Source of the DNA: Nageia nagi
Lineage: Eukaryota > Plantae > Pinophyta
Direction of reading: 5' to 3'
NCBI GenBank assembly: GCA_050084985.1
Contig: JBITNC010000002.1
Location: 9,920,001 to 9,984,000, forward strand
Length of the DNA: 64,000 nucleotides
In this document: in pieces, positions 801-34,500 of the stretch
Layout: every line of letters begins with the position of its first letter
How positions within the stretch are numbered: the first letter of the stretch is position 1
The notes under the pieces: model-generated
Database searches by the model: none
The model's input: only the letters and a program-made list of their open reading frames with translations
Told to the model about the DNA's origin: nothing
Program-made: the position numbers and the translations under genes

Positions 801-2179
801 GGATGGTTAGAAGAGTGATAATAGAATTAAGGGTCTCTACCTAGATGAATAGGTAGATGAATGATCTACATGCAAAAATATCATAATTAACTAATTAGAT
901 TAATCATATGTTATGATATTACATGATATTTTATTAGATATATATTTGATATTAAGGTTACTGGGAATGAAGGATTAGATATGGATATGGTACTCTATAG
1001 AGCCAAGAGTCCATAGGAACAAAGTAGATCATATAGTTGCATGATGCATTATATGTTTGCTTATCAATTTTAACCCTTGTAATATGTGTAGGTTTTCATA
1101 ATATCAACATGGTGCACCTGTAGGAAAAAGAATGAATACAAGATTAATTCTTAAGGTAAAATTAATATTTATTTGCATGGTAAAATTTGATAATATCATG
1201 ATTATTAATTTTACTATGATTAAGAACTAAATAATCATATTATTTTTTTGATTTAATAGTTAATGGTTAATGTTGTATTTTAACATTAAATGTATTACTA
1301 TTTATTAATTTAGGAAAATTTATTATAAAATACATATGACTAAATTAATAATTTATAATTAAAATTGTTATTACTTAAATTAAAAGTAGGGAACATAAAT
1401 AAAGTAAAGAAACTTATTATTTCACTAGCTCTAAGAGAAATAAAAGAGCTTGAGTGCGTACTTATTTGATCAATATTCCTCCTCTATTGGGTAATGGTAG
1501 ATGATGGAGAGTGGACATTGGAATATTAAAAGAATCCCTCCATGATCTAGAAACTTTTTACATTTATTAATTTGTGTTAAAAATTAGTAGAGTTAGGTGT
1601 AGAATCAATGAGGAAAAAAATCCTAAAAGAGAAAAAAAAAAGGAATCCCAAGAGGATTTGGTACTAAAAGACACCCAAAATATTGAATACTATGTTAGTT
1701 CTCCTCTTTTACATGTTGATTTTAGTTGCAATCTATGAACGATGTTTGTATCATGTTTTTATCAAATTAAGGATGATCCCTTTCACATATTCATGTATGC
1801 TTATCATGAAATCACTACATACAATGGGATTTTAATTTATGTTATAATTATTTGAATAGATTTTCATTTCATTATGCATCTTGATCTAAGAATATATGAT
1901 AATTTTCTATTCCATGAGATGGTACATCTCTATTGCATTTGGTAATTTGAGTATAGCTTATAATCATTAAATTTTATGAGATGGTGTATCTATATTTAAT
2001 TTATTAGTATTATACAACTTCCTACATGATCATAATTTTATCATTCCTAAATACAAGGTACTCACAACCACATTAATAAAGTTTCTATTTAAAGAGTCCT
2101 TGATGTATGTATAAACTGAATAAAATTACTAAATTTTTATTATGCTAGAAAAGAAATAATTCTTTATTATCAAATTCCA

Positions 2180-2760
2180 CATCATACAACATAAGTATGC
2201 TATTTGGAATATATATTATTTCCTTAATTACACTTGACAATTTATTCAATCTTCCATGGATATCTCATGTTTGTAGGTGCAATCTCTCTCCTACAAGAAA
2301 AACATATATACTTTTGTCAAAAAGTTTGCATGCCTTCTCTATGCTTTTAATTTTTACATAAACATATACCATAACAATTTTACAATTACTTACAGATGAA
2401 AACCACTTCTTATTATTTTCCAATGAATGCCAGCACTCTCTACGAGTATCCTCTATATATTTAAAAACCTAGCTTCTATATTTATAAGAGAAAATAACAC
2501 AATGACATATAAGTGGAAACTAATTTTATCTATTCTAAAAATAGTGTATTGTAGTAAGATAAATATATATTTTTTCTTCAATTTCAATTTGGATAGAGTT
2601 GTATGAGAGTAATTTTCATATTATTACTAAAACAATTTATGGATAACTAATGAGATTGTATAATTATAAAAATTCAACTAAAAACATTTTACAATCCATG
2701 AAACTGTGTTTGCCTCATGCATCTTATCAAACATTTCATGTGAGGCTATAGGAACTCTTT
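2180..2760 (-). pseudogene. Scrambled PLS-class PPR / E+ domain fragments
   Basis: Minus strand reads HEMFDKMHEANTVSWI (~2745-2695), GIHWKIIRSGF (~2435-2400), SIEKACKLFDK (~2345-2312) and FLVGERLHLQT*DIHGRLNKLS (~2305-2235). Confidence 0.65.
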
Positions 2761-4409
2761 TCATAGTACTTTTATATATTTTTTCTATTATGTGATAACT
2801 TTATTCTTTGTTATATAATCTATGTGATTTAAATCATGGATAAAAATAAAACATATCTCTAGTATAAACTACACTTTAGCTTTAAAGAAATTACATAATT
2901 ACCTAGTAATATATATGGATTATTAGAAATATAAACCCAATATAACCATCCACATCACTTCTCCTTTCATGATAAACCTTATTATTTGAAGTTGGTAAAA
3001 CCAATTCGTTTAAGAAAAAAAAAAGATAATTATTCTCAGGAAGACAAATTCTACTCTGAAAGGAAATCATAACTATTGTATTCATTTTATCGCTTAATTT
3101 TATCTTGAATTATTTTTATACTATTTGCCTCTTTGGATATGACATATGATAATTGGAATTTCATTGCTTCATATGTCCATCATAGGTCTAGAAAATGCTT
3201 CAAACTCCTTATGATTGTTGAACATTTATTAATATGTAGGTTATTTGCTCTCATTGCAAATGAATATGCTTTGGAATCTAGATGACCTAAATAATATTTT
3301 AACTTTAAGTTATTATTATCATATTTAAATATGATATTTTTATTTAAATACAAAAAAACTCCATTGTTGTTGCATACAATATTTGTATTATTTTATTTAT
3401 TTTTAAATAAAAAGTACTATTAATATTGAAAATATAGACTTTAAAAAGGTGAAAAATTTTAACATTTTGGATGTATTAAGACGTAATAACAATTTATTAT
3501 TTAATAAAAATTGAATAATAAATTATAATCAAAAGAAAAAATAATATTCATGTTAAATGTATTATGCAATTATAGAAGCATATTCAATTACCCTAGCTCA
3601 TGAGGTTTTCATATGAATAAATAATTAGTACTTCAAGGATTTAAATATAATAGAAATACTTTGAAAAATTATTTTTCAAACCATAGGGAATACAAGAAAG
3701 TATTAATATTATTGTTACAAATGATGATTGTTAGGATATGAAAATGGACATTATCCATAAATAAATAACACAACCTTAATATTAAAAAAGGGTAGAGTTT
3801 ACAAGGTTAACATGTTCTAATGAAAAGAGTATACCAAAAGCTTGAGTAAATAAATTTTGAAGTTATTTTTTGAAGAAATATATGAAAATTAAAAATTTAA
3901 TAGGAGTTGTTGATTTTTATGATATATTATCTAATCATGTTTTGAGTTATGCTTGATAATTTTATTATTTTATTTGATAACCTCCTAGGTTAAGGAAGCA
4001 GGGATCATTTTAGCCATGAATATTTACTTATAAGTGAATTTTAGGAATTGTAAAATTAGAAAATGGAAAAAAATTTAGTTTAGATTTGAAATTGAGTTGC
4101 CAAAAGTTTTTTTTTTTGGACCTAGGTTGCCAAGTTTAAAATAAATTTTAAATTAAATTTTTATTAATTCACCAAAATTTTGAAATAATAACTAACCAAC
4201 TTCACCTTGAAATTACAAATTATTATTTATCTTTTTTATTAAATCACCCCATATAAATACATAAATTTAAAATATATATTTGATATATCCATATTTGTGC
4301 AAGCATGTAAACAAAGCCTACGAAATCTAAAAGGAGTTGCAAATCTACGATAATAGGTAAGATCATATTTTGAATTGTATTATGTTTCATCATTTGAAAT
4401 TCAAATCTA

Positions 4410-5160
4410 CCATCGAATGGTAGCAATCTAGCATATGTATCTAAACAAACCATGATGCTTTCGAATAGTGGCATATGCTTCCACATGATGTCATGTGCTT
4501 TCATATGGTAGCAAACTACCAAATGGTTGTAGATTGCTACCGAACGGTTGCAAGTTGCTACCTTAAGGTTGCAATTTGCTATAAAATGGTAGCAAATTGC
4601 AATTGATTGCAGATTGCTATTGAACAGTTGCAAGTTGCTACCTTAAGGTTGTAGTTTTCTATCGAATGGTTGTAAGTTGCTACCTTACGATTATAATTTG
4701 CTACCCTTCGATAGCAACCTACTACCAGATGATTGTAGATTGCTACCATTTGGTAGCAACCTAATACCTAACCTTGTTACCAATTGGTGATAATATGCTA
4801 TCATTTAGTAGAAAAACATTCTACTATTTGGTAGAGGTAGCAAACTACTACCAAACGGTAGTAGGTTACCACCAAATGGTAGCAACTTGTTACTAGATGG
4901 TTGGAGTTTGCTACCATTAAGTGGAAACCTACTACCATTTGGTAGTAAAACCTATTACCATTTGGTAGCAACCATTCCTGCTAGATGGTTATAGTTCTAC
5001 TACCATTCAGTGGCAACCTACTACCATTTGATGGAAACCTACTACTGTTCAATACTTGCTACCTGCTTCTACCATGTGGTTGCATTATTTGTAAACTTGA
5101 TCAAGAAGTAGAAAAAAATCCAATTGCACAATAGCAGCTCTTACTGGATGGTAGCTAATT
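4410..5160. repeat. Left subterminal array of the hAT element (TTGCTACCAnnTGGTAGCAA quasi-palindromes)
   Basis: Dozens of gctacc/ctacca/ggtagc motifs in both orientations, e.g. ttgctaccatttggtagcaa at ~4740. Confidence 0.85.
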
Positions 5161-5235
5161 ATTCAACATGTTTATATTTTTATCTATTTGCGATTGTATT
5201 AAATTTTTTTTAATCAATTGTTAATTATATATTCT

Positions 5236-7960
5236 ATGGACTCCAAGAATAGTAGTAAAGGGGGATGAAAAAAAGATATATTATCTTATTTTGCTAATAT
5301 AAAGTCACAAAATGAAGGAACTCATCAAGCATCTTCAATTGATATAGGTACTTTTCTTAGGTGTTATTTTTAATGTAAGGCTTGAAAGTCTAAATTTATT
5401 AATTTCAATATATGGAAATATATTGTGATTATAATGATATACCACCTAATAATAATCATGTTTCACCTAATTTTGGTCCAATTAATAATAATGATAATTT
5501 TTAATTTCAATATGCAGAAAACCCCAATAATCATGTACCACCTAATTTTTCTCCAATTGATGTACAACCACTTTTAGTTGAGTACCCTACAAATGGACCA
5601 CCTTTACATGATGATAATCCTCCTAACCCATCTATAGATAAAAGTTCACAAAAATGTATGGATAAAACTATAGACAAATCTACAAAAAATAATAGTAGGA
5701 AATTGAAAAGAAAACATGGTACAAAATGGACAATTGGAAGAGTTTTTAGGTTGATTGGGAAGAAAATATCTATTCATATAACCAATTGATCTTAGTGATG
5801 TAAATGATCCAACAAAGTGCAAATGTAAAATATATTTTTGGGCAACAAAAAGAGAACATCCAATGCAACTGAAAATAGATACAATACAAAAAAATTATGG
5901 TAAATTATATTACAACAAAATAGATGAGAATGGATAGACAATTAAGTGTTGCAAGGATAAAATTAAAAATGAGTATAATCACTTACGATATAAAGTAGAA
6001 TATGATAGGTACATGAAAGAAAAACAAGATCTACAAGATAAAGGTGGAACACTAGAAACACATTTTGAAAAAAAATTACTGATGTAAAAAGGTTAACAAA
6101 ATTTACATAATTCTGTACTATGTTTTATATTCTTAAATAGGGTAGGCCTATTGCAAATTTTATGAATTTTAAAAGTTTATTTCAAAGAGTAGGATTACAA
6201 AATGTACCATAAAAATATTGGTCAAAGATAAGTGCTTGGGAAATAGAAAAATATTTGTTGATGTTTGAGATTGAAAATTTAAAAAACAAAGTGAAAAAAA
6301 CACAATTTATTTCATTATGAATTGATGAAGTTACAATGGTGGATAATACTTCATGGTTTTGTATGCATGTATACACTTTTCATAATAATTGTAGGACACC
6401 ATATATATTGAATGTTCATAAAATGGATGGAAATTGTAATGCAAAAAATCTTTACAAGTTAGTTATTTCTAACTAAAAAGATTTGGTTGGAATAGATGAT
6501 TATGAAATTCCTACAAAATTGATATGTGTTGAAGCATATGGTGCATCAATAATGAAAGATAATTGAAATTATCTTCATGTTAGATTACAAGATATACTAG
6601 CTCCTTATATGATTCCTATTCATTGTATGGCACATAGAATGAACCTTGCATATAGAATTGTCAGCACTTTCATAAGCATATCAAAAGTGGAAGAGCTTAT
6701 TTGTGATTTGCATGCATATATTGCAAGAAGCCCAAAAAGATATAGAGAGTTCAAAAATTTATTTGTTGGAATAACTGATAGAAATAAGCTTTTAAAATAT
6801 AATGATACAAGATGGATTTCATTGTATGAACTAGCAAAAAGAGTTTTGATTGAATATCCATCTTTAGTTGGTTATATGTATGAACACTGTAATACGATTG
6901 ATAAAGAAAAAGATTTACTATTTCATTTAATAGATTTTTAAATATTGCTAACTTTATGTAGAATTCTTCCAATGTTACAAGAAATCAATACTTTAATGAA
7001 ACATGCTCAAGAAAGATCTATATACATATCTGATTTCATGTATTTGAGAAAAAGGGTATCTTTATCTTTGGATATGCTTTATATAGGTGCAAAAAAATTT
7101 AAACATCCTTTATTTCAAAGATGGAAAACTTTGAAAAATGTTAATCATCCAAACATTTTTTTGAAATTTAACATCAATGATCATATTTGTATAGAGCTGA
7201 AAGAAAAATTGATACTGTTACATGTTTAAAATATTAGAAGGGATTTGGTTGGAGAAGAATATGAAGATGAACCTGTAATTCATCTTCTTTTTTATAATTG
7301 TATTTATGAAACACGTGTTAATTTGAAAAATATTTGTACAATCTTAACTAAAGAAATCTGTGAATGATTTCAAAGATATGATTTACTTGAATCTATGGTA
7401 GTTGTGAATCCCAAATTTTGGAATACATATAATGGTGAATAGTTAATTTGTGATTTGTTTCGCAAATACATGGTAAATCTTGGAACATATTTTGGTAAAA
7501 TTGTAGAAATAAATCAAAAAAACATTAATGGTATTTTAAATAAAGATTTGTTGACAACATAAGCCAACCATTAAATGTCTTTGGGTGAAACTTTATCCAA
7601 ATTCTTATCTCCAAGGTAATATTAGTGGGTATTTTAGATTATATGAATTATGTCAAATAATGATTTTGGGTTCTATTGAAGATGAAAGGGTATTCAGTGC
7701 TTTATCTTTTATTAAATTCAAGCTTTGAAATAAATTGGACAAAAATTTGGATATATGTATTAGATTATATGTTTCTTCTATTGCTCTAGATTCTTTTCTG
7801 ATATAAAGGGTAGTGAATCTTTGGTTTTTTGCTGCACAAAGGAGAGGTGCAAATAATTGTGAAGAAAATGCTCCAATAGAAAAGTACACATCAATAATTA
7901 AAAATATCATAACAAAAAAAGTTATCAAAGGGTTTGAATTTGAAATACCTAAATAAAACA
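5236..7960 (+). pseudogene. hAT transposase relic (ZNF862-like: zinc finger, DDE core, hATC dimerisation domain)
   Basis: Translated fragments: CKCKI zinc-finger remnant (~5820); ISL*IDEVTMVDN (~6310-6350, first catalytic D); decayed DGAS motif (~6530); IHCMAHRMNL (CxxH) and DTRWISL in ORF 6609-6941; GSIEDERVFSALSFIK (~7670-7720). Many stops and frameshifts. Confidence 0.9.
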
Positions 7961-8204
7961 TTGTTGAAGGGTTTAAATTTCAAACACTTATAGTTTTGGA
8001 TCTTATATTCTAAAATTTGCTTTACTATTCAAATTAGTTTCATGTTATTGTTGGCTTATATTTTCAATAAGCATATTTTTTTTCTGTGTATGTTATTTTT
8101 TACTTATAAATTCAGTTACTATATTTGTATTTTTTGTCCAAAATATTTCTTGCTTGTTATTATTTCCAAATCAAAATAAATTTGAATAACTATATAAATT
8201 TTAA

Positions 8205-8720
8205 CAAATATAACATTCAACCATAACATTTCAAAGAATCAAATATAACATAACCATAACATTTCTAATAGAATAATAAAACCATAACATTTTAAATATA
8301 AAATAAACATAACATTTCAAATATAACCAATAAATATAACCATAACATTTCAAAAAATATATAATCATATAACATTTCAAATAAGTATAACCATAAAATT
8401 CAAGTACAACATAAATTTGAAATAGAAGATAACCATCACATAAATTTCAAAGATAATCAAACATAAGCATATAAACTATCAATGTAGTCTAAACCAAACT
8501 AGTCTTAACAATAACATAACCTTATAATAGTTCAAATAAGCATAACCATAAAAATCAACTACAAAATTCAATTACAACATAAATTTGAAATATAAAACAT
8601 AGTATAACCATCAAAGTATTCTAAATCAAACATAATAATAAAAACTATAAATGTATTCTAAACCAAAGTAATCTTAACAATAATCATAGAAGCCATCAAA
8701 GTAGTTCAATAGAAACCATA
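8205..8720. repeat. Degenerate AACCATAACATTTCAA tandem array between the 3' ends of the two hAT genes
   Basis: Repeated ataaccataacatttcaa / aacataaatttgaaata units. A longer unit (aaactat..aatgta.tctaaaccaaa.ta.tcttaacaataa) occurs twice (~8475, ~8643). Confidence 0.7.
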
Positions 8721-8749
8721 AAAGTACTAAAAAGTGTCAAATCAAACAA

Positions 8750-11620
8750 AGATCACTTCCCCCCTTATCCTCCTCCAGAACCCTTTGGCTCATCTAAAAG
8801 CCCAATAAGATTAGCAACTTTGGTAAGATTGCATAATATATAATTGTCTGAGGTAGATACATTGTCTTATGAAAGCAAACTCGGATCTACATCAATTATC
8901 TCTTTCCATAAAATGTCTAGATCGAGTTGATGCTCTTTAATTATCATTATATAAGCTTTATTCATTTTCTTCAATTGGGCCATTTCATCCTTAATTTGAA
9001 TGAATGTTGTAATACTTTTTTTTGTAGTTTTCAAATGAATTTTAAACATTTAAACATCTTTTAACAATTTATCATACCTAGCCTGCAATCAAATAACAAT
9101 ATAAAAATCATAAACATGAATATAAATATATTTTTCAAAACATAAATATAACATATGTAAACATTGAAATTAAGAAATAAAATTGTTACCTCAGCTTGTT
9201 CCTTTTGCGCTTTCACAATCTCTACCAAATTTTTATCTCTTGACCAAAGATCATAGTAAGCTTTGGCCTTTGCATTTAAATTTTCTAAATGGTTACACAT
9301 AATACCCATTGTGTTATCATTATTTTCACATTGAACATTGATTGAACCTACTTATGATTCTTCAAACTTTCTATTTTAGCTATTCATTCTCAACCAATGT
9401 GTACAAAGAATCATGTTGAGAATGATTATGATAACAGGTATTAATTTCCTTTATCAATGCTTTGGCCTATACTTCCTATGTCTTTAAAGTATTGATGTTA
9501 TCTAGGATAACATCATTTATCTATTCAAATGTATCATCTACAACAAGTGCATTCAAGGGAAAGTAGATGAGTTCATCATCCATTTTACCAACAGTGTCCT
9601 CCACATTTTGTGAAGGTGCTATAGTACTTATCTGTTGCAAATGAGAAACATGAACTTGAATCTAAATGATATCATGGGTGCTCAATGGTGGATTTGAACT
9701 AGTATCCATCCCTAAATAATTCACATCCAAATAGATGTTTCATAAATTAAAAATACCAACACTATGTACATCATCCAAATGTAGATCAAGAAAATAAGAA
9801 ATTCTTGATAATTTCACCATACTGTAGCTCATGGAAAGAGCATCCTATTGTAAATTCAAGCATTTTCCTACTCTTATTATGGTTACTGGATGTGCAACAA
9901 GAGGAGGAGGCATAGGTGATAATGACTTCTACTTTTGAGAACTAGATTTGCCACATATATCAAAAAAAAAATATTATGAAATATGAATTTGTTTCTATGG
10001 AAAAAAAAGTTATGATAAAAATAAAATCCAAAACTAGATACCTAAAGGAGGTGTAATGGAAGGAGTTTGAAATGGTTTATTAGGTGAATCCACCATATCT
10101 TAACTATGATGATTGGAATAGAAATTGAATTAAAAGTTGAAAAGATTTAGCATCTATTTATAAACTATTTTGTTTTGTACATTGAAAGAATGATACCACA
10201 TGAAATTAAGATGCAACCAAATGGTTACAAGTGCTATCAAGCAACTGTGCGATAGTAGAATGCTACTGTGCAGTTGCATCCTGCTACTTGCAATTGCATC
10301 TTGCTATATTATGATTGCAATGTTGAATAAAAAAATAAAAATAACAAATTTACTATATTACCTCCTTGTGTTGCATTTTCATTGAAAGGAATTTCTTATT
10401 CAAATATAAAATTTGAATACCTATCAAGAAATCTTGTCTTAGGAATAGCAACATTTCCTTTTACTACAACCATAACAATTTGTGAAAAAGTTAAGATAAT
10501 ATAAATAATATAATAAAATATTGTTAATTAAAATGTAAAATACTTATATTCATTGAACATTCACCGATGATAGGAGGTGAAACATTCCTTGTTCTCCTTG
10601 TAGAGGATAGTATTAACATTAATGGACTTGAAGTGTCCATAGACTCATTGTCACCACTACCTTCTATATGAACTCCTCTTAGTGTTGCTTCCTATTTCTT
10701 TAATGTTTGTTTTGAAAGATGTTGAAAAAACATAATTTGATTAATGTTAGTAAAATTTTAAACATTAAAATATGTTAACTTAAAATGAGAAATAAATTTG
10801 ATTTATAAATACATGGATTTTCTCAATTGGTAAAGTTAGAGCTATCATTTGTGAATCCAATGTTGTTGGAATTGGAGCTATATTGATAACATTATGGAAA
10901 GCTTCATAATAGAGCTAAAATGTAATTTGTGCATGATATAAAACTACCATCATTTTGAATGGAAAAAGACACATAATATTTAATTTTGTCTGAAATATAT
11001 GTACACCAATCAAATTTTTGACCACTCAATGAACAGAGAATGTAAACTATAGGCCATAATGGAATGTTGGATGTTCTACCTTGAAAAACAATTCTCAACT
11101 AAAAAAATTCATAGATTGCTTTGAAGTAGTCATGGGGGAAGTTTTTTTAAACTATTCCTCTTTTGTTTCGATATTATGCATAAAAAAAAAAAGATGATGC
11201 TTAATCAATTAACTTTTAGTTATAGATTAATAGATAAAATTATCTAAAATGAAGTTTAAAGAACAACTTACCAACATTATCAATTTGAATGTGGTAAGTT
11301 TCCTATAAATACAATTTTTCCTCTCTAGACAATAGAACTTTAGAGGTAACAGGCATACATCATCACCATGATGTGGTAAACCAATCAAATGACTAATATC
11401 TACAATTGAAACTCCAAAGGAAAAGCTTCTTGATTTCATAACCACATAAAATCTTGCTTTCTTTATATCACAAATGAGCATAAGATAGTCCAATAAATTT
11501 GAATCTATTTCAAATTATGGCATAAAAAAGCCTTTTAAACCTTACTTGGTCCACCCATTCTGAGTAACATTGTAGGGTAAAATAAGATAAAATACCAAGG
11601 CATGATATATTCCTATAAGA
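8750..11620 (-). pseudogene. Second gene of the hAT element: multi-exon, PMD (plant mobile domain)-like N-terminus, coiled-coil C-terminus
   Basis: Minus-strand translation ...RFKRLFYAII*IDSNLLDYLMLICDIKKARFYV..SFGVSIVDISHLIGLPHHGDDV (11540-11350) resembles the PMD pattern ID..L..L...W.....F....(T)I.LEDV..LLGLP..G. FDWCTYI (~11010) resembles the later W motif. A GT-AG intron at 9189..9083 joins ORFs 9061-9309 and 8867-9049 in frame (..KEQAE|ARYDKLLKDV*MFKIH..). Confidence 0.6.
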
Positions 11621-11959
11621 AAGTCAATGATTGGTGGATGATGAAGGGTGGGACATGGTTTTATAAAAGTAAAATTTGTGATTGAGGTAAAATATTGCAA
11701 AAAAAACAACAAAAATGATAACTATGAATGGTTAGAATTATCTAAAACAACTAATAAAATTTTACTTTATGAAAAAGAAGAGCACATGGCACCTTGATTT
11801 GGAAGGAAAAGAGAGCTTTGGATAGGTAGAGAAAATGACAAAATGAAGAAAATGAGTCATCTAATGTGCATATATGGGTAATTCATATGTGGCACCATGA
11901 ATTGGAAGTTGACACGTGGAGCATTCAATAGCATTTTATGGGATTGTTGTTGGTGAGGG

Positions 11960-12200
11960 TTTGCTACCAATGGGAGCTATATGAGGTGGCATCTGCTACC
12001 ATGTGGTAGTAAGATGCTATCATGAGGTAGCAAGATGTTGTGGTACAGTAGCAAATTGCTACCATGTGGTAGTAAAAACTTGGTTGCTACTGCTCGATGG
12101 TATTTTGCTACCATGCGGTAGCAGAAGCTAGCTTGTTATTGACCAATGGTAGTTTGCTACCGTGGGGTAGTAGAAGCTAGCTTGCTACTGCTCAATAGTA
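11960..12200. repeat. Right subterminal array of the hAT element
   Basis: Repeated tgctaccatgtggtag-type units, same motif as 4410-5160. Confidence 0.85.
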
Positions 12201-13489
12201 GTCTATTTTGTATTTGGTCTTACCAAAAAAATATACTTTTTTTTAGAAAATTCAAATTTGCCTTAGTGTTTTTGAATTTTTAATTTAAAATCATCCTTGT
12301 TACATATCTAATTAGCCTTTAATTTTCCAAGTAAGTTTTAAAAAAGGGCTCTTAAAATAATCCCTATAATTAAGGAATACTAAGTAAAGGTATTTAAGAT
12401 ACTAATCATGATATTTTCAAATTAATTTGAGATTGATTCTTTCTTGGATTGAAATGTTATATGAATTATTAAGAATTATATATTAAAATTATTGTGAGAA
12501 TATCTTAGGTCAATGAAGAAATATTTGGATGTTAAATAATCATAAGTTTTATTAAAGTAAGATTAGTATATTTTCTTTAAAATAGTATTGCATATTAAAA
12601 TATATTAAGTATATTGTGAACAAGATAGACCTCCTAGGTCAAGGAGGGAATATCTTGTTGAAAGATACTTAAAGGATTTATTAAAGAAATATTTATTTAT
12701 GCTTTTTTGATGTATAAATCATATAGTTCCATTCATGAAAAAGATACGTATTAAAATCCATTTGAATCCACAATCCTTTAAGTGCTAGAAGGGTAAGTGA
12801 AAGAGGATGGGTCCACTTTGTGGCCAAAAAATGGAAGATTTTTCTTTGATTTTTCATTTGGTCACAATTAATCTCAAAATTTAAACTATTTGGAGATGGA
12901 ATATTGAAAAGGTCACTTTGATAAAAATGTAGTGGTAGTGCTCCAAGTCTAGTTTTCAAATATATAATTTATTTCAATACCCATATGATAGAAATTAAAT
13001 TTTGATAAGCATTTATTATTTCAAGAAAATACTAATAATTGTTAGGCCCACATAATTTGACCTAAATTAAAGTATTTTTTAAGATCCTTTTGCAAAAATA
13101 TAGTTAAGATATGGAATAATGTTGAGAATACTTTTTCATAAGTTTTTGAAGAAATTTTTTACTAATTTTTCATTTGCCCTAATTATGTTTTTTAATAGTG
13201 CTTTTGTTAGGTTAGCATAACTTGACCTAAACGTATCCTTTTTTAGAATTTTTTATTTATTTAGTACAAAATTATGTGTATAATGTTTCCATGTAGTGTT
13301 TTTCATAATTCTAAAAAAAAAAGGTTATTAAAAAAAATAAGACAACCTACTTTTACAAGTTTATGGACAAGTTTGATTGAAAATTAATTGAAAAATAGAA
13401 AATATAATCCAATTACCATTGATAAGAACTTGCATGTGCATGTTCAAGACCGAGGATTGACTCACCATCCTCTCCCAATCCAAAATACA

Positions 13490-31587: not shown

Positions 31588-34500
31588 TGTTGAAAATTCA
31601 AATCACAACACTTCAAAATCTGACCTCTAAAATAAATTTCATTCCCCCTATTTTTAAACACAATCACATTTGAGAAATGCAATTGCATTCTAAAAATGTA
31701 GTCTCATTCTAGAAATGCAACTGTATTTTTTTGGGTAGTTTTAGTAATTTTTTCAGTGCACTACCCTTTCATTTTAACTTTATTTTTGGTAGTTATAAGT
31801 TTTTTTTTCCTCTTTTTCATTTTTGATAGTATTAGGGGATTTAAATTCATATTTTGTAAGTTTTCATGGGTTGGATTGATATATTATTATGAGATCAAGT
31901 AAATTGGCATTGAACTTATCATGCCAACTATTTGATAGAATGTATCCTTCCATTTTTACATGAATAAAGAATTGATTTCAATCCCATTTCTTGTTTTTTA
32001 TTCATATATGTATATGAATAAATGTGTTAAGTTTATATTGATAAAATTCATTTGGTATCAGAGTAAGAAGATCATGTTTTTTGGCTTTCAATAAGCTTGT
32101 GGAGTTTGAAGAAAATATTTTGGGTATTGTTGTAGAAGTTCTCTAATGGCCAACAATACAAACTCACTTGCAATACCTAATTCTAATGGATTAGATTATG
32201 AATACTGGAGCATCAAAATGATGAATTTTCTTAAAGGAAAAGACCTTTGAGGTATTTTAGAGGATGGATGTATAAAGACCTAATGATGGGATGCATTGGT
32301 TCATGATGCCAAGAAAATTATGAATGAGATAAGAAGAAGAATCCCCTTGGTCTTTCTCATCTACAATCAACCTTTAAAAATTCTATATTCAAAGGATTCT
32401 AGGATGTAAGACAACAAAAAAAGAATGTAAATCCTTTAAACAAGGCTAGTAAGGAAGTGTGAAGGTGAAAGAATTCAAGCTTCAAACCTTGAGAAGAGAT
32501 TTTGATATTTTCCATAAACAAGAGAATGAGAGTGTTGGTAACTATTGTGTGAGAATGGAAGCCATATTTTAAAAAATAACCACTTTAGGAGAAGCATTTG
32601 ATAAAGCACTACTTGTCAAGAAATTCTTGAGGACTTTAACACCAAAATGTTACAATATTTCCATTATTATTGAAGAGTTAAAAGAACTTTCCACCATGTA
32701 GTATGATCAATTTATTGGTTGTCTTACATCACATGAAGAGAGAATTTTTAAGAGATCAAGAGTTATCACAAGTTATAATGAAGAAAAAAAATTCTCTGCA
32801 AAAGATAATGAGGGAAATAATTATGGACATGGTAGAGATCAAGGTAAGGGTTCTAGAATAAGGGGTAGAATAGGAATAAGAGGAAGAGAAAGATGAAGAG
32901 ACCATAATTTAGAAGGTGATCAAGACCACAATACGAGAGGAGGATCCAATGCAAGAGGAAGAGGAAGAGATAAGAGGAATGTGCAATGCTATCATTGCAA
33001 TAGAGTTGGCCACTATGAGAGGGAGTGTAGGCTAAAATAAGCCTCTAATAATGGAAGATCATCCCATTATGGAGAGGAAGAATCTTATGGAGAACAAAAC
33101 TTGTTTCTTTCCTATGCAAAAGAGGAGTTGCATGAAAATATTTAAATCTTCATTTCTTATGAAAAGTAAGAAAATTTAAGTAATGAGACTTGGATCATTG
33201 ATAGTGGGTGCAAAAACCACATGACTAGTAAGAAGGATTTATTTTCATCTCTTGATCCTTCCTACAAATCAAGCATAAATATTGGGGATGAGAAGAGCTT
33301 GGATATGGTAGCAAAGGGGATAGGGATGTTCCTACAAAAAGAGGTTAAATAAAGGTAAAAATATATTTATTGTGCACTTTATTTGAAGCATTCTTTAATG
33401 TGTAATGGGGACATGCTTGAAAAGAACTATAAGTTGATTTTTGAATATAATATGTGCAATATTTTTGAAAAAAATAAAGGTGGTAGGCTGGTCATAACAA
33501 TCAAATTGACTAAGAATAAGCTTTTTCCTTTGAATTTTATTGAGAAAGAGGTAGAACTTGCTTTTATGGGTATTCAACATGAAGGTCATATTTGGCATTT
33601 GATATTTGGGCATTTGAATTTTCAAATTTTGAAGATGCTTTCACCACTTATTTATGGTTTTTGAAAGGTTGAAGACTACAAGGAGGTTTGTGAAGGTTAT
33701 GCAATTAGAAAGCATGCAAGGGGGTATTTTCCAAAAGGTGAAGCATGGAAGGCTTTATATCCTCTTGAATTGGTTCATAGTGATATTTGTGGACCAATGC
33801 AAACACAAAGTATGGGTAAAACTTCATATTTTCTTAATTTCATTTATATTTATCAAGGTATTCTTGGGTGTATTTCATCAAATAAAAAGATGATGTATTT
33901 GATTTCTTGAAGGAATTCAAAGATTTTATAGAGAATCAAAGTGGGAGCACCATTAAGTTTTTGAGGACTAATAGAGATGGTGAATTATTTTCTAATGAGT
34001 TTATTCAATTTTGTAGGGACTTTAGCATCAAGAGGCAAATAACCTCTCCCTAAACACCCCAACAAAATAGGGTTGTAGAAAGAAAGAATAGGAAATTGAT
34101 GGAGATGGTTAGGTGTATGATACAAACTAAAGGTTTTAGTAAGTTTTATTGGGTTGAGGCTATTAGGATTATTTTTCTTATTCTTGATAGAACTCCTACA
34201 AAGAGTTTGGAAGGTGTCACTCCTTATGAATGTTGGTTTGAAAAGAAACCAAATGTGAAGCATTTTAAGGTATGTGGGTTTGTGGCTTTTTTTCATTTGA
34301 ATGATGAAAATAGAAAGAAATTAGATGCAAAATATGAATATTGTATTTTTATTGGTTATAGTGAGCAATCTAAGGCTTATATTTTTTTTTAACCCAAGAT
34401 TATTGTGTCTAGAGATGCAATTTTTGAAGAAGGGGGAGTTTGGGGAAAAATCAAAAATTATGTATTGATGATGGTTTTATTCAAGATATTTTTTCTAATG

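Follow-up and report, generated by a model that had tools for sequence, protein, structure and literature searches.

hAT elements are treated as one-gene transposons. The maize element Ac yields one transcript and one protein, makes 8-bp target-site duplications (TSDs) and carries subterminal repeats that its transposase binds (PMC3260210). Here we describe a stretch of DNA from Nageia nagi (contig JBITNC010000002.1, positions 9,920,001 to 9,984,000 of the forward strand), whose 64,000 nucleotides (nt) are hereafter called the window and supply all positions below unless another contig is named. Positions 3999-12366 probably hold a single insertion, complete but long dead, of a hAT-superfamily DNA transposon that is very abundant in this AT-rich genome and whose autonomous form carries two convergent genes: a transposase on the + strand and a spliced gene, gene 2, on the - strand.

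Among plant DNA transposons, anti-silencing accessory proteins have essentially been a feature of Mutator-like elements, either as VANC or as PMD domains fused to or lying beside MURA-type transposases. VANC, from the VANDAL elements of Arabidopsis, carries a DUF1985 domain, binds short motifs in tandem arrays of VANDAL non-coding DNA and removes methylation (PMC5735166). The PMD-C domain, as found in MAIN, MAIL1 and MAIL2, has been reported to be structurally similar to the DUF1985 of VANC and to act via DNA motifs (bioRxiv 10.1101/2024.09.27.615353). PMD domains have been described from Ty3/Gypsy retrotransposons, host genes and Mutator-type DNA transposons of angiosperms, and one review calls them angiosperm-only (PMC8616336; PMC12973397). 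In maize MuDR, two convergent genes (mudrA and mudrB) lie between the ends, and the accessory protein interacts with the transposase (PMC12973397). Outside plants, hAT7 of rust fungi carries a TET/JBP dioxygenase thought to counter methylation-based silencing (PMC12730594).

The window family resembles each of these systems in part. With Ac/Ds it shares termini that begin C/TAGGGAT, an 8-bp TSD, short motifs in both subterminal regions and the hAT signature blocks; it differs from Ac in its second convergent multi-exon gene, its much longer subterminal arrays, the left one spanning about 650 nt, and an additional array in a gene 2 intron, and its transposase N-terminus looks, by reading alone, like the TTF-zinc-finger/ZNF862 type and not like that of Ac. 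Like VANDAL, it is a DNA transposon with a predicted DUF1985-type protein besides its transposase and short-motif tandem arrays in its non-coding parts. VANDAL, however, belongs to the Mutator superfamily, whereas the ends, TSD length and transposase motifs here are those of hAT, and the Pfam DUF1985 model misses gene 2. The nearest named clusters and structure of gene 2 in the Atlas are PMD, as in MAIN, MAIL1, MAIL2 and the transposon PMDs of MULE and Ty3/Gypsy elements; PMD has not been described from hAT, however, and PF10536 does not match gene 2. The two convergent genes recall MuDR, which is of another superfamily and has long terminal inverted repeats (TIRs). As a hAT with a second gene, hAT7 is also comparable, but it has fungal hosts, a 7-bp TSD and a cargo enzyme of a different fold, unrelated to gene 2. 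A second, convergent and spliced gene is thus unusual for a hAT, with a two-gene precedent in fungi. Literature searches found no published description of a plant hAT with such a second gene, so that the undescribed lineage proposed in a preliminary description of the window stands for plant hATs in the literature searched and not for two-gene hATs at large, of which rust hAT7 is already one.

Ends, target site and transposase of the element

The main parts of the element and its flanks are as follows.

3991-3998, no strand: left TSD, TAAGGAAG, identical in register to 12367-12374 at 6 of 8 positions
3999-4015, + strand: left TIR, CAGGGATCATTTTAGCC, identical to the left end of an independent copy, L002 (from its position 1673 onward)
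5400-7955 (start approximate), + strand: decayed hAT-type transposase gene, recognized by its motifs and 84% identical to L002 2367-4747
8000-8750, no strand: AT-rich spacer between the convergent genes, with tandem repeats of AACCATAACATTTCAAA type (period 25-35 nt) and units of about 155-169 nt
9050-11656, - strand: gene 2, a decayed multi-exon gene running from ATG 11656-11654 to TAA 9052-9050
12347-12366, - strand: right TIR, reverse complement TAGGGATTATTTTAAGAGCC, matching the L002 right end TAGGGATCATTTTAAGAGC
12367-12377, no strand: right flank with the second TSD copy, TAATTAAG in register and TTAAGGAA at 12370-12377

The final bases of the element, ending at 12366, are GGCTCTTAAAATAATCCCTA, of which TAGGGATTATTTTAAGAGCC is the reverse complement. 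Short TIRs of hAT type, CAGGGATCATTTTAGCC and TAGGGAT[CT]ATTTTAAGAGC, are present in both copies, and the first 7 nt of both window ends are those of the Ac/Ds termini, C/TAGGGATGAAA (Ac TIR from PMC3260210). Both copies also carry the 8-bp duplication of the hAT superfamily. It is perfect in L002 (8/8) and, in the window, identical at 6/8 positions in register or at 8/8 if an indel is allowed: an exact TTAAGGAA occurs at 3990-3997 and at 12370-12377, offset by 1 nt on the left and 3 nt on the right, making a small indel (3-4 nt) adjoining the right end likely. The window's target duplication is therefore real though imperfect. Self-BLAST found no second copy of the element within the window.

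hAT transposases are marked by a series of signature blocks: D.A..M, C..H (of HC.AH.LNL type), TRW.S and a C-terminal S...ER.FS. The + strand at about 5400-7955 is a series of short open pieces in which blocks of this type can be read directly: a D-rich IDEVTMVDNTSW, a block of DGAS.M.G type (GTDGASVMQG in the better-preserved copy), IHCMAHRMNLA (HC.AH..N.A), NDTRWISLYE (TRW.S) and a C-terminal EDERVFSALSFIK, with the S...ER.FS-type signature read as VEDERVFNALSFIKSKL. At the N-terminus, a basic stretch is accompanied by a Cys/His-rich block, which we take to be a TTF-type zinc finger. By its ends, the length of its target duplication and these blocks, the element very probably belongs to hAT, as the preliminary description had read the + strand gene. 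The same description placed a transposase and a - strand multi-exon gene between one pair of TIRs, and both relics indeed lie within 3999-12366, in a layout that recurs in L002.

The window copy is inactive now. Measured against the frame of L002, exons 1-4 of gene 2 have suffered 4 indel events and contain 5 stops, and the transposase segments contain at least 11 stops, which bears out the earlier description of a dead copy. Public data also contain a fragment (P0016, ENA, 132 amino acids) with 53% identity to the transposase C-terminus and a long acidic tail; it points to another hAT family of this type that has diverged from the present one.

A second insertion and the abundance of the family

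Metagenome contigs from JGI were scanned with an alignment of gene 2 exon-1 fragments, yielding three contigs (L001-L003) that represent one locus assembled three times from three samples. In BLASTN comparisons, window 3996-10162 is matched by L002 1673-7626, a stretch that takes in the left end, the transposase (84%), the spacer and gene 2's 3' half (78%). Window 12373-10331 is matched by L002 9235-11939 in the opposite orientation, a stretch with the right end and gene 2's 5' half (72%). The outer 8 bases on the left of L002 are ATTAAAAT; those on the right are ATTTTAAT as shown, or ATTAAAAT on the element's strand. A perfect 8-bp match of this kind is expected by chance about 2 times in 10,000 at that base composition, and the two parts are therefore both ends of one insertion, at a genomic site that differs from the window's. 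The order of parts in L002 is that of the window: end, transposase, spacer, gene 2, end.

The inverted right part of L002, together with 1.5 kb of flank, is bounded by a perfect 123-nt inverted duplication (L002:7565-7687 and L002:12197-12319), which is also found at the ends of L001. The inversion may be a real rearrangement of the kind that aberrant hAT transposition produces, or it may come from an assembly path running through a repeat. Inversion notwithstanding, the junctions of transposase, spacer and gene 2 and of gene 2 with the right end both recur in L002. The apparent break at window 10162/10331 falls in the variable intron 4 of gene 2; in L001, some 960 nt of unlike intron sequence lead on to window 10162-10104. 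The tandem-repeat spacer occupies the space between the 3' ends of the two genes in both copies (window 8170-8700; L002 5356-6157).

Every one of the 30 bins of 6400-12390 is represented, at 80% likeness or better, among Logan contigs from four sequencing runs with four organism labels (1,476 to 11,490 contigs per run); at about 200-300 nt in length, these contigs inform on presence and abundance, not on linkage. Each of the four runs, which come from three studies, holds 127-655 contigs at least 99% alike to the window copy, plus thousands at 80-95%. Either the four labels belong to a single species or to closely related ones, or the family has parts that differ very little from species to species. 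Where the window copy and the family contigs differ, transitions dominate: of about 1,046 places in X1, 176 are C>T, 212 are G>A, 146 are T>C and 150 are A>G. This fits methylation-driven deamination decay in a genome of 26-30% GC, a content near the 29% reported for Welwitschia (PMC8275611).

Between the window copy and L002, indels take up 6 gap columns in 872 exon-like columns versus 77 in 426 intron columns, and substitutions are equally frequent in exons and introns. Ka/Ks for the transposase (Nei-Gojobori) is 0.56-1.0 in the true frame and 0.29-0.86 in wrong frames; the ratio is uninformative because the divergence is essentially post-insertion decay.

At the edges of the gene 2 segment, inverted-repeat pairs numbered 11, within the 1-16 obtained from shuffled sequence, and these are AT-rich matches of the kind expected by chance; no duplication other than such matches was seen. 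Given a second insertion with its own TSD and the same layout, coverage of the segment in four runs and no internal termini, gene 2 is a part of the transposon family and no nested insertion peculiar to the window copy. The preliminary description had asked whether other copies lack 8750-11620 and whether this segment has termini of its own; L002 carries both junctions, and no such termini were found.

Structure of gene 2 and the motif arrays

Gene 2 begins beside the right end of the element and is read towards the transposase.

11279-11656, - strand: exon 1, about 127 codons, containing FEIDSNLLDYLM...FSFGVSIVDISHLIGLPHHGDDV; 3 stops and 2 indel events in the window copy
10813-11080, - strand: exon 2, 90 codons, ...KFDWC.[FY]IS.K...FISCTNYILA..YE; no stop, one 2-nt indel
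10584-10707, - strand: exon 3
10355-10457, - strand: exon 4, followed by a donor, GTAATAT
9083-9189, - strand: GT-AG intron of 107 nt, phase 0, conserved in L002

Exon 1 ends at a donor G|GTAAGT near 11270, exon 2 shares 60 of its 90 residues with L002, and exon 4 is followed by a long intron and then by more exon-like blocks. Past the 107-nt intron the reading frame continues for 10 codons to TAA 9052-9050. The window copy and L002 have this stop in common; it is therefore probably the true stop of gene 2, and the open reading frame (ORF) at 8870-9049, in the same frame beyond it, would then be 3' untranslated region. In the preliminary description the intron 9189..9083 joined two ORFs in frame. 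The intron is exact and keeps the frame, but the stop separates the two ORFs. The multi-exon organization claimed for the - strand is upheld by the ATG, the four 5' exon blocks, the long intron and the GT-AG intron. Overall, gene 2 has at least six exons, of which the first four amount to about 290 codons; the remainder looks helical. L002 holds an intact exon 1 of 136 codons (P0008), and family fragments from databases (P0001-P0005 and P0010) have 42-67% amino acid identity and keep the core GLPHHGDDV.

Short motifs are arrayed at three places in the element.

4400-5070, no strand: left subterminal array of palindromic TTGCTACC/GGTAGCAA motifs, period 21/42/80 nt, 15 exact matches
11950-12200, no strand: right subterminal array of TTGCTACC/GGTAGCAA motifs, period 21/49 nt, 5 exact matches
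10194-10306, no strand: third, internal array of TGCTAC/GCAAC type, period about 20 nt, in intron 4 of gene 2, which is long and variable

There are 21 exact matches to TTGCTACC in the window, where 1.1 are expected, and 20 of them sit below the two ends of the element (15 at 4419-5063 and 5 at 11961-12161), in agreement with the matching subterminal arrays first described; periods across the subterminal arrays are 21, 42, 49 and 80 nt. The sole exact match outside the element is at 33307-33314. For the looser motif G[GA]TAGCA, 26 of 32 window matches fall inside the element. The intron-4 array consists of a repeat copy at 10194-10230 and a further stretch at 10261-10306, and L002 has an array at the equivalent place (L002 11961-12149), with five G[GA]TAGCA matches in 175 nt. 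Exact TTGCTACC is nearly absent from L002, whose arrays are built of the variants GATAGCA, GGTAGCA and AGTAGCA; the array motif therefore drifts between copies. By analogy, the arrays may be binding sites of the transposase, as are the AAACGG repeats of Ac, or targets of the gene 2 protein, as in VANDAL, or both.

Predicted product and possible role of gene 2

We lean towards reading the domain encoded by the first four exons of gene 2 as a predicted DNA-binding protein of PMD/DUF1985 type. In the Atlas, the named cluster nearest to the window piece is DUF1985, at 0.94 with 188 of 256 features shared. The intact exon 1 of L002 has PMD and DUF1985 as its best-scoring named clusters, at 0.88, and its closest structural model is a MAIN-LIKE 1 cluster (template modeling (TM) score 0.57 over 120 residues), with DUF1985 at TM 0.50. 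Gene 2 also has a block of the form F.F....[ST]..D[IV]..L.GLP..G..V and a later one of the form [FY].W[CG]S......; read by eye, these, and likewise FSFGVSIVDISHLIGLPHHGDDV and then KFDWC... in exon 2, stand in an order that we take to be that of the PMD landmarks.

Relatives annotated as PMD were absent when the exon-1 piece was searched exhaustively with HMMER against 1.84 billion representatives, and also from a profile search; these and the remaining homologue searches gave short unnamed fragments of the same family. Two proteins from the representative search (P0006 and P0007) were rejected as low-complexity repeat proteins (MOZ/SAS; Phage_base_V repeat). The preliminary description's coiled-coil-like C-terminus found an echo only in sub-threshold Pfam matches to Sec20, ING and NAM-associated, which were dropped as not reproducible between copies.

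Several results weigh against the picture of a hAT element with a PMD-type accessory gene. At cut-offs of E<=1 to 10, no relevant Pfam family turned up in the stop-free pieces of either gene. The Pfam hAT models PF05699 (Dimer_Tnp_hAT) and PF14291 (DUF4371) found no match at E<=1 or <=10 in pieces of the window copy, L002 and P0011-P0016, the queries being stop-free pieces of 45-151 amino acids from decayed copies. Likewise, PF10536 (PMD) and PF09331 (DUF1985) found none even at E<=10 in the window and L002 exons, P0001-P0005, P0008 and P0010; here gene 2 was searched exon by exon as stop-free pieces, which lowers sensitivity for PMD, as the same limit does for the hAT models. Sequence searches of the PDB with single pieces and with the two family profiles found no relative, neither Hermes nor any other hAT for the transposase nor anything for gene 2. 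AlphaFold2 models were unusable both for the transposase C-terminal family alignment (mean predicted local distance difference test (pLDDT) 47.7) and for the exon-1 family alignment (39.7). The Atlas scores of the intact exon 1 are below 0.9, a range that calibration treats as a lead only, with one third of shuffled proteins also receiving ten same-clan matches, and its structure match involves a model with a pLDDT of only 0.54. Ka/Ks between the two copies fails to separate real from wrong frames, even for the transposase. L002 is the only other copy readable end to end, and its right part lies inverted in the contig. The transcript structure of gene 2 is predicted from DNA sequence.

Three other explanations of gene 2 have to be set beside this one. 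That the segment 8750-11620 is another element nested in the window's hAT copy is highly improbable: we have no positive point in its favor, both of its junctions recur in L002, its edges show no repeats beyond chance, and contigs from the four runs cover it like the remaining element. A second possibility is a host gene or gene fragment that an ancestral hAT captured (transduplication) and that was then amplified passively, with no role for the transposon. Filler sequence or fragments of captured genes are indeed found in hATs and in other DNA transposons of plants (Ds2 and Ds-like elements; PMC3260210). Gene 2 has introns, as a genomic gene would, the two-copy Ka/Ks revealed no purifying selection, and no family model names it. 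Yet gene 2 is a whole gene with its own ATG beside the right end, convergent with the transposase, and it occupies the same place in an insertion that is 16-28% diverged. Protein fragments down to 42% identity retain the ORF and the core motif, indels avoid the exons, and an array resembling those at the ends lies within a gene 2 intron in both copies. We accordingly consider capture unlikely.

A stronger competitor, though still rather unlikely in our judgment, accepts gene 2 as a real accessory gene borne by the element and disputes its class: the product would belong to no classified family and might, for instance, be a transposition helper like MURB, its resemblance to PMD being a short motif shared by chance. 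The absence of Pfam matches at any threshold and of PMD-annotated proteins in the representative and profile searches speaks for this, as does the calibration of Atlas matches below 0.9. It has to contend with the match of the window piece to DUF1985 at 0.94, with the PMD and DUF1985 clusters and MAIN-LIKE 1 structure nearest to the intact exon 1, and with the order of its blocks, which we take to be that of PMD. The PMD-like label of the preliminary description thus keeps a degree of backing from the Atlas look-alikes, weakly, and receives none from PF10536.

Taking gene 2 as a PMD/DUF1985-type protein, a tentative mechanism can be proposed. Acting at the C/TAGGGATCATTTTA ends, the transposase of gene 1 would move the element by cut and paste and make 8-bp target duplications. 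Gene 2 would be transcribed inward from the right end, convergent with the transposase, and the G[GA]TAGCA/TTGCTACC motifs arrayed below both ends and again inside its long intron would be available as targets. By analogy with VANC in VANDAL, the gene 2 protein might bind these arrays and protect the element from silencing, a possibility that we hold only tentatively; alternatively, it could aid transposition, as MURB does in MuDR. Equally speculative is the broader proposal that a hAT lineage in a very GC-poor, heavily methylated plant genome has its own sequence-specific anti-silencing protein of PMD/DUF1985 type, which would be co-evolving with arrays of G[GA]TAGCA type below both ends and within the protein's own gene intron.

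If this proposal were true, the strategy of encoding a chromatin or anti-silencing factor along with its target motifs would not be confined to one superfamily. A VANC-like system would have arisen or been acquired outside Mutator and, with a gymnosperm host, outside angiosperms too, and the way in which PMD/DUF1985 domains read DNA and oppose silencing could be studied in a second, independent system. For annotation, the thousands of gene 2 fragments in the genome are transposon relics, not host genes. The window itself is AT-rich throughout, at 23-34% GC except for one block of 46% at 50-52 kb.

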